Source of the DNA: Schizochytrium sp. TIO01 | Lineage: Eukaryota > Protista > Bigyra: Labyrinthulomycetes | DNA length: 32,426 nucleotides | Direction: 5' to 3' | Assembly: GCA_004764695.1 (NCBI GenBank) | Contig: SMSO01000014.1 | Coordinates: 1 to 32,426, forward strand | In this document: one piece after another, positions 22,747 to 28,598 of the stretch | How the letters are laid out: each line of letters begins with the position of its first letter | Numbering within the stretch: the stretch's first letter is position 1 | Notes under the pieces: model-generated | Database searches by the model: none | Told to the model about the DNA's origin: nothing | The model's input: the letters and a program-made list of their open reading frames with translations, nothing else | Position numbers and translations under genes: made by a program

Positions 22747-25700
22747 ATGTCAGACCACGCACGTGTTGTCGCTGCCCTTGAAGAGCTTCAGAATGGCGCT
22801 ACAACACTGAAGTAAGTTAACACGCTTGCTTGCTTGCTTGCTTGCTTGCTTGCTTGCTTGCTTGCTTGCTTGCTTGCTTGCTTGCTTGCTTGCTTGCTTG
22901 CTTGCTTGCTTGCTTGCTTGCTTGCTTGCTTGCTTGCTTGCTTGCTTGCTTGCTTGCTTGCTTGCTTGCTTGCTTGCTTGCTTGCTTGCTTGCTTGCTTG
23001 CTTGCTTGCTTGCTTGCTTGCTTGCTTGCTTGCCTGGGTAGTCGTTTGTTTTGTTGGATCCCAAGTTCATGCGATTGCTTGTTTGGTTGATTTATTGGTA
23101 TGCATCCATCAAAACAAAGAGCAAAATGACAAAACGACAAAGACAAATGCTGAAAGCCAACCTAGATCACTCACGTCCATGCATGCATGCGTACATCTAT
23201 TGTAATATGTAACGTGTAATGTATTGCTTGCCATCATTCATTCAAATCGACAGTCTTCGTGCGAACAATATCGGCGACGAGGGCGCCAAGGCAGTGGCTG
23301 CGGCGCTGAAAGAGAACCGGTCGCTGACATCACTTGAGTAAGTTGTCTACGCAACAGCGCAGCTCGTGGACTTGTTTGTACATGATGCTTGGTTTGTTGT
23401 TTGGTGGGTGGGTCGGTGTTGTTTTGCAAGTTTATGCAATCGCTTGTTTGTTTGATGGATGGATGGGTTGTCTGTTTGAGTGAGTATACATCCATCGAAC
23501 AAAGAGCAAAATGACAACACAACAAAGATAAATGCTGAAAGCCAACCTAGATCACTCACGTCCATGCATGCATGCGTGCATCTATTGTAATATGTAACGT
23601 GTAATGTATTGCTTGCCATGATTCAATCAAATCGACAGTCTTTTTGGCAACAAAATCGGCTCAGAGGGCGCCAAGGCAGTGGCTGCGGCGCTGAAAGAGA
23701 ACCGGTCGCTGACATCACTTGAGTAAGTTGTCTACACAACACCGCAGCTCATGAACTTGTGTGTACATGACGCTTGTTTCGTTGGTTGTTATTTTGGTCG
23801 GTGTTGTTTTGCAAGTTTATGCAATCGGTTGTTTGTTTGATGGATGGATAAGTTGTCTAATTGACTGAGTACGCATCCATCGAACAAAGAGCAAAATGAC
23901 AACACAACAAAGAGGAAATGCTGAAAGCCAACCTAGATCACTCACGTCCATGCATGCATGCGTGCATCTATTGTAATATGTAACGTGTAATGTATTGGTT
24001 GCCATCATTCAATCAAATCGACAGTCTTGGAAACAACTTCATCCGCGACGAGGGCGCCAAGGCAGTGGGTGCAGCGCTGAAAGAGAACCGGTCGCTGACA
24101 TCACTTGAGTAAGTTGTCTACGCAACACCGCAGCTCGTGGACTTGTTTGTACATGATGCTTGGTTTGTTATTTGGTGGGTGGGTCGGTGTTGTTTTGCAA
24201 GTTTGTGCAATCGCTTATTTGTTTGATGGATGGATGAGTTGTCTGTTTGAGTGAGTATACATCCATCGAACAAAGAGCAAAATGACAACACAACAAAGAC
24301 AAAATGCGGAAAGCCAACCTAGATCACTCACGTCCATGCATGCATGCGTACATCTATTGTAATATGTAACGTGTAATGTATTGGTTGCCCTCATTCAATC
24401 AAATCGACAGTCTTAGAAACAACCAGATCGGCTCAGAGGGCGCCAAGGCAGTGGCTGCGGCGCTGAAAGAGAACCGGTCGCTGACATCACTCAAGTAAGT
24501 TGTCTACGCAACACCGCAGCTCGTGGACTTGTTTGTACATGATGATTGGTTTGTTGTTTGGTGGGTGGGTGCGTCGGTGTTGTTTTGCAAGTTTATGCAA
24601 TCGCTTGTTTGTTTGATGGATGGATGGGTTGTCTGTTTGAGTGAGTATACATCCATCGAACAAAGAGCAAAATGACAACACAACAAAAATAAATGCCGAC
24701 AGCCAACCTAGATCACTCACGTCCATGCATGCATGCGTGCATCTATTGTAATATGTAACGTGTAATGTATTTCTTGCCATCATTCAATCAAATCGACAGT
24801 CTTGATAACAACGATATCGGCTCAGAGGGCGCCAAGGCAGTGGCTGCGACGCTGAAAGAGAACCGGTCGCTGACATCACTCAAGTAAGTTGTCTACGCAA
24901 CACCGCAGCTCGTGGACTTGTTTGTACATGATGCTTGGTTTGTTGTTTGGTGAGTGGGTCGGTGTTGTTTTGCAAGTTTATGCAATCGCTTGTTTGTTTG
25001 ATGGATGGATGAGTTGTCTGTTTGAGTGAGTATACATCCATCGAACAAAGAGCAAAATGACAACACAACAAAGACAAAATGCGGAAAGCCAACCTAGATC
25101 ACTCACGTCCATGCATGCATGCGTACATCTATTGTAATATGTAACGTGTAATATGTATTGCTTGCCATCATTCAATCAAATCGACAGTCTTTCTGGCAAC
25201 GATATCGGCTCAGAGGGCGCCAAGGCAGTGGCTGCGGCGCTGAAAGAGAACCGGTCGCTGACATTACTATCGTAAGTTGTCTACGCAACAGCGCTGCTCG
25301 TGGACTTGTTTGTACATGATGCTTGGTTTGTTGTTTGGTGGGTGGGACGGTGTTGTTTTGCAAGTTTATGCAATCGCTTGTTTGTTTGATGGATGGATGG
25401 GTTGTCTGTTTGAGTGAGTATACATCCATCGAACAAAGAGCAAAATGACAACACAACAAAGATGAAATGCTGAAAGCCAACCTAGATCACTCACGTCCAT
25501 GCATGCATGCGTGCATCTATTGTAATATGTAACATGTAATGTATTGCTTGCCATCATTCAATCATATCGACAGTCTTACAAACAACCAGATCGGCGACGA
25601 GGGCGCCAAGGCAGTGGCTGCGGTGCTGAAAGAGAACCGGTCGCTGACATTACTATTGTAAGTTGTCTACGCAACACCGCAGCTCGTGGACTTGTTTGTA

Positions 25701-28598
25701 CATGATGCTTGGTTTGTTAAATGGTGCTTTGGTTGGTGTTGTTTAGCAAGTTTATGCAATCGCTTGTTTGTTTGATAGTTGTCTGTTTGACTGAGTATAC
25801 ATCCATCGAACAAAGAACAAATTAACAACACAACAAAGACAAAATGCGGAAAGCCAACCTAGATCACTCACGTCCATGCATGCATGCGTGCATCTATTGT
25901 AATATGTAACGTGTAATGTATTTTTTGCCATCATTCAATCAAATCGACAGTCTTTCTGGCAACAAAATCGGCTCAGAGGGCGCCAAGGCAGTGGCTGCGG
26001 CGCTGAAAGAGAACCGGTCGCTGACATTACTATTGTAAGTTGTCTACGCAACACCGCAGCTCGTGGACTTGTTTGTACATGATGCTTGGTTTGTTGTTTG
26101 GTGGGTGGGTCGGTGTTGTTTTGCAAGTTTATGCAATCGCTTGTTTGTTTGATGGATGGATGAGTTGTCTGTTTGAGTGAATATACCTCCATCGAACAAA
26201 GAGCAAAATGACAACACGACAAAGATGCAATGCTGAAAGCCAACCTAGATCACTCACGTCCATGCATGCATGCGTGCATCTATTGTAATATGTAACGTGT
26301 AATGTATTGCTTGCCATCATTCATTCAAATCGACAGTCTTCATGGCAACAATATCGGCTCAGAGGGCGCCAAGGCAGTGGCTGCGGCGCTGAAAGAGAAC
26401 CGGTCGCTGACATCACTTGAGTAAGTTGTCTACGCAACACCGCAGCTCGTGGACTTGTTTGTACATGATGCTTGGTTTGTTGTTTGGTGGGTGGGTCGGT
26501 GTTGTTTTGCAAGTTTATGCAGTCGCTTGTTTGTTTGATGGATGGATGAGTTGTCTGTTTGAGTGAATATACCTCCATCGAACAAAGAGCAAAATGACAA
26601 CACAACAAAGATGCAATGCTGAAAGCCAACCTAGATCACTCACGTCCATGCATGCATGCGTGCATCTATTGTAATATGTAACGTGTAATGTATTGCTTGC
26701 CATGATTCAATCAAATCGACAGTCTTTTTGGCAACAATATCGGCTCAGTGGGCGCCAAGGCAGTGGCTGCGGCGCTGAAAGAGAACCGGTCGCTGACATC
26801 ACTTGAGTAAGTTGTCTACGCAACACCGCAGCTCGTGGACTTGTTTGTACATGATGCTTGGTTTGTTGTTTGGTGGGTGGGTGGGTGTTGTTTTGCAAGT
26901 TTATGCAATCGCTTGTTTGTTTGATGGATGGATGGGTTATCTGTTTGAGTGAGTCTACATCCATCGAACAAAGAGCAAAATGACAACACAACAAAGATAA
27001 ATGGTGAAAGCCAACCTAGATCACTCACGTCCATGCATGCATGCGTACATCTATTGTAATATGTAACGTGTAATGTATTGGTTGCCCTCATTCAATCAAA
27101 TCGACAGTCTTGATAACAACCAGATCGGCTCAGAGGGCGCGAAGGCAGTGGCTGCGGCGCTGAAAGAGAACCGGTCGCTGACATCACTTGAGTAAGTTGT
27201 CTACGCAACACCGCAGCTCGTGGACTTGTTTGTACATGATGCTTGGTTTGTTGTTTGGTGGGTGGGTCGGTGTTGTTTTGCAAGTTTATGCAATCGCTTG
27301 TTTGTTGATGGACGGATGAATTTGTCTGTTTGATGAGTATGGCATCTACCAAACAGAGAGCCAATTGTCCAACACCATATAAAACTAATTTTGAAAGCCA
27401 ACACTAAGAATCACTCACGTTCATGCATGCATCGCGTGGCATCTAATGGCAATAAAATGTTGTTAATGTATTGCTTGGCCATCATTCAGATAAATTGGAA
27501 AGACTTCGAGATAACGAAATCAGGCGACGAGGGCGCCGAGGCTGATGGCTGCAGCGTCTTGAAAGAGAACCGGTTCGCTGACAAATATAGAAGTAAGCTT
27601 TGTCCTTAGCATATCATAGCTCAATGGATTTTTTATGTACATGATAACTTGCTTCCCTGGTTTGTTGATTTGGGGTGTGTGTTATATAGCAAGTTAACTG
27701 CAACTCGGTTGTTTGTTTGATGGATGGATAAGTTGTCTGTTTGACTGAGTATGCATATATTGAACAAAGAGCACAAAGGACAACACAACAAAAGATGCAA
27801 TCCTGAGAGCCGACCTCAGATCACTCACATATATATCAATGCGATGGATGTATCTAATGCAAAAGCAATGTAATGTATTTCTTGCCATCATTCAATCAAA
27901 TCGACAGTCTTGAAGACAACAATATTGGCGACGAGGGCGCCAAGGCAGTGGCTGCGGCGCTGAAAGTGAACTGGTCGTTGGCAGAATTAAAGTAAGTTGT
28001 CTACGCAACACCGCAGCTCAAAGACGTTTTTGTACATGATCCTTGCTTTGTTGGTTGGTTGCGTCGTGGGTTGTCTAGTGTGTTGTTTTGTCGATGTTTT
28101 TCTTCGCGCCAATGCAAGTTTGTTGTGGAATTGTTTGTTCGGTTGAGTGTGGATCTAATAGAGAGCATGATAACATCAGAGAATAAATGAAACTGTACTG
28201 GCAGTACTGTGGGTACCTTTAAATGACGTGAAACTGTTAACTGACGAACGGAGATGATGCTGTTTGGTCTGCTAATTCTTAGATTAAGATTGAGCGATGA
28301 AGGACAGAGGGAGCTGAAATTGAATGAAGAGATTTATTATGCAAAGACAATAAGGAAAATGCTTGAACAGAAGTCTCGTGAGCTTCGTTGTATACATGTT
28401 ATAAACGGCGTATTTAGTCTGCCGTTTTCAGTGCAGTATAGTCTTATTGTACAAGGTTGGCCTGCTAACATCTCTGGTGAGCTGAGTTCGAAAGAGGACT
28501 ATCTTGCTGCACAGGAAGTAGAGCTTGATATATTGGAAGCTTTAATCGTTACCTTTAGTGAATCATTGGGATTGCTGGGCCCTTACATTTTCGAATGA
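22747..28598 (+). CDS. Gene C: RNI/NLRC3-like LRR-array protein with one LRR per exon (12 intact + 1 degenerate) and a ~105-aa unique C-terminus; ~462 aa without the degenerate exon
   Basis: Exon 1 is 22747-22811 (MSDHARVVAALEELQNGATTL|gtaagt). The 84-bp CAG/GTAAGT phase-2 exons start at 23254, 23639, 24025, 24411, 24800, 25188, 25574, 25951, 26337, 26723, 27108 and 27908 (consensus LxxNxIGSEGAKAVAAALKENRSLTSLx). A degenerate exon lies at ~27503-27592. The terminal exon 28283-28598 follows gctaat...ttag in the matching phase (LRLSDEGQRELKLNEE...PYIFE*). Confidence 0.85.
22824..23031. repeat. Perfect (GCTT)52 microsatellite in intron 1 of gene C
   Basis: 208 bp of uninterrupted GCTT starting 12 bp after the exon-1 boundary. 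Confidence 0.95.
23060..28040 (+). repeat. Tandem array of 13 units of ~386 bp (84-bp LRR exon + ~302-bp intron)
   Basis: Spacing between exon starts of units 1-11: 385, 386, 386, 389, 388, 386, 377, 386, 386, 385 bp. Introns are near-identical. Confidence 0.95.

Follow-up and report, generated by a model that had tools for sequence, protein, structure and literature searches.

A subtelomeric family of spliced leucine-rich-repeat genes in Schizochytrium sp. TIO01, homogenised as units and probably under diversifying selection at the binding face

We analysed a 32,426-nucleotide stretch of DNA from the labyrinthulomycete Schizochytrium sp. TIO01 (GenBank assembly GCA_004764695.1, contig SMSO01000014.1, positions 1 to 32,426; the whole stretch is hereafter called the window). 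Between positions 23098 and 28059 it contains a tandem array with a period of 386 bp (12.8 copies, 89% matches by Tandem Repeats Finder, TRF). Each 386-bp repeat is one exon plus one intron, the exon encoding a single 28-residue leucine-rich repeat (LRR) of the ribonuclease-inhibitor (RNI) type. Reading of the plus strand gave a spliced gene model at 22747-28598, made of an ATG exon, 12 intact 84-nt exons, one broken unit and a tail exon. Its parts are listed below, each LRR exon being named after the four residues that follow its first leucine; "scan" stands for a regular-expression scan, and the RNA-like runs are those of the splicing analysis further on.

22747-22811, plus strand: exon 1, 65 nt, ATG + 21 codons, ending in phase 1, two bases into a codon (direct reading)
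22812-23253, plus strand: intron 1, between exon 1 and LRR exon 1
22824-23033, no strand: perfect (GCTT)52 microsatellite in intron 1 (TRF, 52.5 copies, 100% matches)
23254-23337, plus strand: LRR exon 1 (RANN), 84 nt (Pfam LRR_6, E = 2.6e-4)
23639-23722, plus strand: LRR exon 2 (FGNK) (scan, array comparison, single-exon profile search)
24025-24108, plus strand: LRR exon 3 (GNNF) (scan, array comparison, single-exon profile search)
24411-24494, plus strand: LRR exon 4 (RNNQ) (scan, array comparison)
24800-24883, plus strand: LRR exon 5 (DNND) (scan; RNA-like contigs depart from the reference exactly at 24883)
25188-25271, plus strand: LRR exon 6 (SGND) (scan; loose end joining an exon end to an exon start at 25188, joints departing at 25271)
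25574-25657, plus strand: LRR exon 7 (TNNQ) (scan, array comparison, single-exon profile search)
25951-26034, plus strand: LRR exon 8 (SGNK) (scan; junction loose end at 25951)
26337-26420, plus strand: LRR exon 9 (HGNN) (scan; joints and loose ends departing at 26420)
26723-26806, plus strand: LRR exon 10 (FGNN) (scan, array comparison)
27108-27191, plus strand: LRR exon 11 (DNNQ) (scan; joints departing at 27191)
27503-27592, plus strand: broken unit 12, exon-like over 90 nt, with stop codons and about five insertions of 1 nt
27908-27991, plus strand: terminal-type LRR exon (EDNN ... KVNWSLAEL) (scan, profile search; the same type closes other arrays, e.g., L016 and L028)
28283-28598, plus strand: last exon, 104 codons plus TGA, an intact open reading frame (ORF) encoding a lineage-restricted helical C-terminal domain

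The 12 intact LRR exons are all exactly 84 nt long and in phase 1, with borders AG/.../GTAAG (scan and translation) in flanks that read CAG before and GTAAGT after the exon; the introns between the repeat exons measure about 301 nt (range 293-315 nt). In the numbering of the LRR motif LxxLxLxxNx, an 84-nt exon encodes L-x7-x8-N-x10-I-G-[S/D]-E-G-A-K-A-V-A-A-A-L-K-E-N-R-S-L-T-S-L plus two bases of the x5 codon. Exon 1 (ARVVAALEELQNGATTL) corresponds to the helix half of an LRR, no signal peptide being found in it, and homologous first exons lie upstream of 14 other arrays (77-90% nucleotide identity).

An earlier reading of the window from its letters alone (the sequence-only reading) had listed twelve 5' variants, which are the exon names given above, and five 3' variants. 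All were recovered, the latter as TSL+D, TSL+N, TLL+S, TLL+F and AEL+K. Its count of 13 units holds for the 12 intact ones, the thirteenth (27503-27592) being broken. This unit 12 is the sole broken exon among about 250 units examined, and its omission from the transcript would keep the reading frame. Depth over 27414-27691 was close to zero even in a DNA-like run (X19), and 27553-27691 had zero depth in all four runs mapped. Unit 12 may be an unpolished stretch of the long-read assembly or a decayed, possibly strain-specific, exon.

Profile and homology searches were run with the exons one at a time. Against Pfam LRR_6 (PF13516; cut-off 23.4 bits) single exons scored 14.9-22.0 bits (E = 1.5e-4 to 0.03), the exon borders splitting the motif. 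Every intact window exon has the makeup of an RNI-like repeat, i.e., 28-29 residues with LxxLxLxxN/CxL followed by a helix. The homologue P0010, which bears the same tail domain, reached 81.8 bits on LRR_6, and its AlphaFold2 (AF2) model (predicted local distance difference test, pLDDT, 79; predicted template-modelling score, pTM, 0.71) shows six strand/helix repeats stacked as a solenoid and, after them, long helices. The nearest solved folds retrieved by Foldseek were tropomodulin/leiomodin and the LRRs of NLRP1, NOD2, NLRP3 and ribonuclease inhibitor, with axonemal LRR proteins also present; E values for NLRP1, NOD2 and ribonuclease inhibitor were 1e-5 to 1e-6.

The 104-residue tail matched no Pfam family and gave no usable hit in a protein atlas search; among 1.84 billion representatives only five distant relatives were found, all from MMETSP or JGI. 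Two of them (P0002 and P0010) carry non-homogenised RNI-type LRRs before the same tail, meaning that the LRR-plus-tail architecture predates the homogenised arrays. AF2 modelled the tail of the window protein as three helices at low confidence (pLDDT 70, pTM 0.37), and this domain may mediate oligomerisation or docking. Across arrays the tail exon has a protein identity of only 57-70%. Between the window and array L028, the last intron (27992-28282) shows two differences and the adjacent tail exon (28351-28515) dozens, so the tail domain is more divergent than the repeats and introns. The window LRR gene contains no signalling domain (NACHT, ROC or kinase). Its product is probably a cytosolic LRR-only protein, in which a short N-terminus lacking a signal peptide is followed by 12 LRRs of the RNI type, 28 residues each, and by a helical tail of some 100 residues.

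When the window's own genome (64 Mb, 37 contigs) was searched, at least 396 copies of the 386-bp unit turned up, with identities of 93-97% and spread over at least 16 contigs; the family comprises at least 40 paralogous genes. For the family analysis, 20 stretches were fetched, yielding 243 exons and 217 introns from 19 non-redundant arrays, with about eight further array clusters lying outside this set. Each of the 246 unit exons defined by BLAST was exactly 84 nt long and without a stop codon, and three further exons that the first scan had missed, which begin with C or A, were also intact. The introns had accumulated 243 indel events in 65.7 kb, a rate that predicts 77 in the exons, where none was seen (Poisson P~2e-32). 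A homologous ATG exon opens every array and a C-terminal exon with an intact ORF closes it, L015 being the exception. There, the tail exon (L015:5990-6289, plus strand) has an in-frame stop (DML-stop-AAN) and the introns are irregular, at 271-377 nt; L015 is likely a pseudogene array, which could still serve as a conversion donor.

Splicing was followed by mapping contigs of three RNA-like runs (X1, X2 and X9) and of the DNA-like run X19 onto positions 24495-28650. In X2, normalised to X19, exon-containing bins were about 25 times deeper than intron-only bins, and X1 and X9 behaved alike in raw depth. Joints departing exactly at exon ends (24883, 25271, 26420 and 27191) were present in X1, X2 and X9, but not in X19. 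They re-enter about 9 nt inside another exon, and the letters in between are TCTT plus different variable codons, meaning that the joints are spliced mRNAs of paralogues. Loose ends with CACTTGA/TCTT junctions occurred at 25188 and 25951, and another (X2 at 25959) had a paralogous first exon joined to an LRR exon. Unspliced contigs occur in the RNA-like runs as well. Exon skipping at the window locus was considered for one joint (26420>27908) and dropped, as short paralogue contigs explain the joint equally well.

A transcript ORF from MMETSP, P0006, runs from an intron tail through the terminal LRR exon into the tail domain, with an acceptor homologous to window 28282/28283. Homology searches with P0006 (whole, or residues 1-40) returned tail-exon ORFs and one weak LRR protein, and no multi-LRR spliced MMETSP ORF. 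The terminal LRR exon at L026:8880-8970 (plus strand) has a GC donor (GA/GCAAGT) instead of GT; the same exon type is spliced to the tail exon in P0006.

At the level of the family, then, the arrays are protein-coding, transcribed and spliced at the predicted sites. What looks like a 386-bp satellite is a spliced gene with one LRR per exon, as the sequence-only reading had proposed, with the frame intact in 246 of 246 exons and with the spliced transcripts whose absence would have told against it.

The gene lies between two ribosomal RNA (rRNA) genes:

22162-22280, minus strand: 5S rRNA gene (Rfam RF00001, 96.5 bits), 466 bp before the ATG of the divergently oriented LRR gene
31871-32426, plus strand: start of an 18S rRNA gene (Rfam RF01960, 516.6 bits), downstream of the LRR gene, truncated by the window end

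A divergent upstream 5S gene was also found at 9 of the 15 other paralogous arrays scanned. Contig C3 runs from telomere to telomere, bounded by (CCTAA)n on one side and (TTAGG)n on the opposite side. It has two arrays, at distances of 25-31 kb and 19-24 kb from the ends, and the direction of transcription in both is towards the telomere. Beside two arrays a tRNA gene stands just past the 5S gene (L013:7719-7789, minus strand; L021:123-193, plus strand; Rfam, 57.1 bits), and in the interior of contigs of 7-10 Mb there are inverted array pairs, reminiscent of chromosomes fused at their ends.

In Aurantiochytrium limacinum MYA-1381, the Group 0 LORE-TEARS have been published as a non-coding spacer repeat of about 9 units of ~385 bp, which lies between the 5S gene and the telomere-proximal 18S gene at nearly all chromosome ends (Collier et al., bioRxiv 10.1101/2023.06.15.545109). 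The window array is the same element. Unit length (386 bp here) and copy number (12.8 here) are alike, and so are the subtelomeric position between 5S and telomere-proximal 18S genes and the TTAGG telomere repeat. The difference lies in the reading: the repeats published as non-coding are here the exon-intron units of LRR genes. The sequence-only reading had noted neither this published identity nor the membership of the gene in a family of at least 40 paralogues. Our literature search found no paper connecting LORE-TEARS repeats with LRRs. As for functional RNAs in the conserved introns, an Rfam scan of the window matched rRNAs only.

A repeat published as a spacer, occupying fixed positions beside the ribosomal DNA (rDNA) at nearly all chromosome ends, could be primarily a DNA-level element serving chromosome-end maintenance or rDNA organisation, as proposed for LORE-TEARS, its frame and transcripts being incidental. 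The unspliced contigs in the RNA-like runs suit this explanation, as do two results given below, namely introns as homogeneous as the exons and a ratio of nonsynonymous to synonymous divergence (dN/dS) of 0.83 in the scaffold. A DNA-level role could coexist with coding, but it cannot account for the coding features: some 250 exons free of indels and stops against 77 indels expected (P~2e-32), conserved splice sites and phase, start and tail exons with intact ORFs in the arrays, an approximately 25-fold excess of exons over introns in the RNA-like runs, and divergent homologues elsewhere that retain the LRR-plus-tail architecture. We consider a mere spacer extremely unlikely.

Diversity is distributed very unevenly along the unit. 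Within the window, nucleotide diversity (pi) was 0.052 in introns, 0.042 at scaffold exon bases and 0.548 at a set of 15 variable bases (exon nucleotides 5-10, 14-16, 23-25 and 82-84), and it exceeded 0.4 in 14 of 84 exon columns versus 8 of 302 intron columns (Fisher P=1.5e-5). Across the 19 arrays the corresponding values were 0.060, 0.0485 and 0.566, with pi >0.45 in 13 of 84 exon columns versus 1 of 301 intron columns (P=1.3e-8). Scaffold and introns did not differ (P=0.26); being equally uniform, they indicate that homogenisation covers the whole unit. The sequence-only reading had called the units homogenised and the introns and helix codons almost invariant, even at synonymous sites. 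Homogenised they both are, and the variable codons are about ten times more diverse than intron sites, so that the second ground on which that reading could have been refuted, a diversity no greater than that of intron sites, fails; however, the introns are not more conserved than the scaffold, and one synonymous base, the third of Leu27, is hypervariable.

The variable bases encode x5, x7, x8 and x10 of LxxLxLxxNx, plus one S/D site. Per-position entropy over the 243 exons bore out the claim that variation is confined to the x positions and the loop after the strand: 19 amino-acid states were found at x7 (3.5 bits), 15 at x8 (3.3 bits), 14 at x10 (3.1 bits) and 9 at x5, with 1.35 bits at the S/D position and less than 0.8 bits at all remaining ones. 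The scaffold residues L6, N9 and I11 were kept in 237, 235 and 240 exons, respectively, and there were 141 distinct x7-x8-x10 signatures.

By the Nei-Gojobori method, the variable codons had dN=1.04 and a local dS=0.50 (ratio 2.1; 4.0 at x8 and about 1 at x7 and x10), and the scaffold codons dN=0.049 and dS=0.059. Amino-acid-changing divergence in the variable codons is thus about 17 times the neutral yardstick provided by introns or scaffold synonymous sites. The synonymous third positions of the invariant codons interleaved with them (L6 CTT, N9 AAC, I11 ATC, G12 GGC) have a pi of only 0.05-0.08, and x8 codons are mostly NNC, the third base being held and the first two varying. The low diversity of the interleaved synonymous sites, together with the held third base of x8, favours selection on amino acids over regional hypermutation. 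No stop codon was found among about 1000 hypervariable codons.

The 3' patch behaves differently. The third base of Leu27 (exon nucleotide 82; e.g., the patch at window 23335-23337) is synonymous, has a pi of 0.67 and covaries with the split x5 codon: CTT-GA occurs 70 times, CTC-AA 67 times and CTA-TC 55 times. Any two of these main alleles differ at every one of the three bases, and intermediates are few. The S/D position is largely biallelic (TCA versus GAC), again with almost no intermediates. The Leu27/x5 covariation is consistent with old, tightly linked patch alleles, yet the equally close third base of L6 is not raised, which is unexplained. Compensation of splice-donor strength was tried as an explanation and discarded, the main triplets at -3 to -1 (TGA, CAA and ATC) having no compensating pattern.

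Could this be a genuine LRR family whose variable codons merely record local or targeted mutation, or an unconstrained surface, with neither selection for diversity nor a repertoire? The high synonymous diversity inside the hypervariable codons (dS 0.5), the dN/dS of about 1 at x7 and x10, and the Leu27 third base would agree with that, and the NNC form of the x8 codons recalls templated mutagenesis. Yet the introns, equally homogenised, have a pi of 0.06, and relaxed constraint alone cannot yield the 0.57-0.74 of the variable sites. The quiet third positions of L6, N9, I11 and G12 run contrary to regional hypermutation, x8 keeps its third base as the first two change (dN/dS 4.0), stops are absent, and recent changes are swaps to pre-existing alleles rather than new point mutations (see below). 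We therefore hold this explanation to be unlikely, and it is selection rather than mutation bias that appears to drive the diversity, as far as sequence comparison can tell. Two specific mechanisms were set aside: regional hypermutation, ruled out by the invariant synonymous sites interleaved with variable codons, and adenine mutagenesis of the kind found in diversity-generating retroelements, since variable bases also occur outside template-A positions and the third base of x10 varies.

Comparison of the arrays with one another indicated how the variation moves. The paralogous arrays differ in unit number, from at least 7 to at least 20 (exons detected within 10-kb windows), as well as in the order of their signatures, with occasional adjacent duplicates; this is the comparison that the sequence-only reading had proposed. 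Units whose upstream introns are less than 1% different still differ at about 50% of their variable bases. The association between variable patches fades within about 10-60 nt: z was 19 for x7-x8, about 6 for x7 or x8 versus x10, and 3.1 for x10 versus the 3' patch; it was no higher than about 2 for the S/D position and for most other pairings involving the 3' patch.

The arrays L022 (G000:C30:5477000-5486999), L023 (C30:5514000-5523999) and L024 (C5:1791000-1800999), each of 11 units, show 99.7-99.98% identity; the two on C30 are in inverted orientation, about 38 kb from each other, and L024 lies on C5. They represent either a very recent copying of whole subtelomeres between chromosome ends or an assembly duplication. 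In the comparison of L022 with L023/L024, the differences number 6-7 in 3525 intron sites (0.2%), 1 in 759 scaffold sites and 5 in 165 variable sites (3%); at the variable sites they come as blocks (CGA>ATC, CA>AT), with the synonymous Leu27 base among the bases changed. The array closest to that of the window is L028, on contig C8; the two differ at 1.3% of intron, 1.4% of scaffold and 9.3% of variable sites, again with 3-nt swaps. The blocks swapped in already exist as alleles in other parts of the family, where several are common. Such block swaps of 2-3 bases between near-identical arrays point to short gene conversion, and the scarcity of flanking differences implies that the tracts are probably only tens of bases long.

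As to where the variable residues lie in the protein, the P0010 model has a strand spanning x3-x8 and a helix that begins at the S/D-equivalent position, which would place them on the concave sheet and on the loop rising from it. The concave sheet and the adjoining loop are the regions that ribonuclease inhibitor and the NLRs (nucleotide-binding, LRR-containing receptors) use for binding. Ordinary housekeeping adaptors of the RNI type, whether cytoskeletal, axonemal or nucleolar, could in principle have been multiplied by subtelomeric recombination, their variable sites being unimportant; tropomodulin/leiomodin and axonemal LRR proteins are indeed among the nearest folds of the homologue, and the gene has no NACHT, ROC or kinase domain. 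However, the binding face of such an adaptor should be conserved, whereas here it alone varies, to the extent of 141 signatures in 243 exons, and unit numbers range from at least 7 to at least 20. A housekeeping function of this sort seems to us very unlikely.

Our preferred interpretation, to which we assign a probability of about 0.8, is that of a subtelomeric repertoire of spliced LRR genes that evolve in concert while diversifying selection acts on their binding face; homogenisation of the units and diversifying selection at that face are well supported. At least 40 paralogues would each sit in a 5S-18S spacer at a chromosome end. With a symmetric phase-1 exon plus its intron as the unit, crossing-over and conversion could add, delete, reorder and homogenise LRRs without breaking the frame, and exchange would proceed by unequal crossing-over and gene conversion both between units and between chromosome ends. 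Against this homogenised background, x5, x7, x8 and x10 of LxxLxLxxNxIG would stay diverse by being selected for amino-acid variety, the S/D site being presumably the largely biallelic N-cap position of the helix, and very short conversion tracts would redistribute the diversity of the binding face. The outcome would be many proteins with a common scaffold and different concave surfaces, i.e., a recognition repertoire. These surfaces may bind variable ligands in an immune-like role, possibly in connection with viruses.

Several points weigh against this interpretation. A hypervariable synonymous base that covaries with x5 is not predicted by pure amino-acid selection, and dS inside the hypervariable codons is itself high (0.5). 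In the scaffold, the dN/dS of 0.83 indicates that purifying selection on its residues is weak or too recent to show. The concave-face placement derives from the secondary structure of a homologue and from textbook LRR geometry, and any ligand, localisation or phenotype of the window protein is putative. The RNA status of X1, X2 and X9 is a guess, and the repeats block the assignment of contigs to the window locus. The last exon of the window is unique in the genome at >87% identity (at least 40 copies exist, the next one being 87% identical); it is present in X1 and X9 at 99-100% identity, but at a depth similar to that of the preceding intron, so that splicing is shown for the family and, from end to end, only predicted for the window copy.

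A stronger version of the above would have the system diversifying actively, with ectopic short-tract conversion rewriting binding-face codons and unit number so that clonal lineages come to differ. We regard it as unlikely. If it were true, a unicellular stramenopile that carries persistent mirusviruses would possess a conversion-based repertoire of variable receptors, with a logic like that of the variable lymphocyte receptors (VLRs) or of chicken immunoglobulins.

The closest known parallel, already drawn in the sequence-only reading and confirmed here, is found in another stramenopile. The LRR-ROCO genes of the brown alga Ectocarpus have one LRR per 72-nt exon, exon shuffling and positive selection on the concave face (Zambounis et al. 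2012, PMC3341825; Front Plant Sci 2024, PMC11378527), and their repertoire has been proposed to serve pathogen recognition (PMC3341825; PMC11378527). Both systems place one LRR on a symmetric exon (84 nt and phase 1-1 here) and shuffle number and order. They differ in that the Ectocarpus exons encode plant-type LRRs of 24 residues joined to a ROC-COR GTPase, whereas the exons described here encode RNI-type LRRs of 28 residues, with a 104-residue helical tail as the sole non-LRR part and no signalling domain. Moreover, exon and intron form here a strict tandem repeat of 93-97% identity in which variation is limited to four or five codons, and the genes lie in rDNA spacers at chromosome ends.

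With the RNI-like LRRs of ribonuclease inhibitor and animal NLRs the window protein shares the 28-residue length and the pattern LxxLxLxxNxIGxxGAxxLAxAL, the solenoid fold being seen in the homologue model; single-repeat homogenised exons set it apart. It does not have the central nucleotide-binding domain of an NLR (NACHT/NB-ARC), for which the gene model leaves no room, exon 1 being a truncated LRR and the tail having no Pfam domain. Lamprey VLRs, chicken immunoglobulin pseudogene conversion, Plasmodium var and trypanosome variant surface glycoprotein (VSG)/ESAG8 genes are other variant families that are diversified by conversion or are subtelomeric. In such families short templated conversion moves diversity, chromosome ends favour ectopic recombination, and the VLRs use LRR cassettes. 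Here, by contrast, the genes are complete in the germline, from ATG exon to stop, rather than incomplete genes to be finished from cassettes as with VLRs, and the proteins have no signal peptide.

The window also holds two minus-strand genes, at 4580-8037 and 15240-20206, both of which contain a protein-kinase ORF (4580-6589 in the first, 15240-17963 in the second). Upstream of the kinase ORFs are single-LRR exons of 84 nt akin to the Group 0 exons (IGDEGAKAVAKAL...):

7519-7602, 7954-8037, 18461-18544, 19674-19757 and 20123-20206, minus strand: LRR exons of the kinase genes, 84 nt each

Their introns, at 351-365 nt, make these units longer than those of Group 0. Each LRR-kinase gene is downstream of a 5S gene (11316-11434; 22162-22280), and both genes are probably what was published as the "Group 5" spacer repeat. 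The Group 0 LRR gene stands head to head with LRR-kinase genes made of related exons.

Relative to the literature, we describe a variant of the one-LRR-per-exon design of Ectocarpus, and a repeat published as non-coding is re-read as genes. For a model thraustochytrid this alters the annotation at all chromosome ends, where a "non-coding" repeat class becomes a large protein-coding family. The design itself, described in brown algae, is extended to a heterotrophic stramenopile that is only distantly related to them and has another class of LRR, in an unusually clean natural case where about 95% of the unit is near-identical and four or five codons are close to saturated. A candidate recognition repertoire would thereby be placed within the recombination machinery of rDNA and subtelomeres, and the question of whether protists keep recombination-driven LRR repertoires against viruses or bacteria becomes testable.

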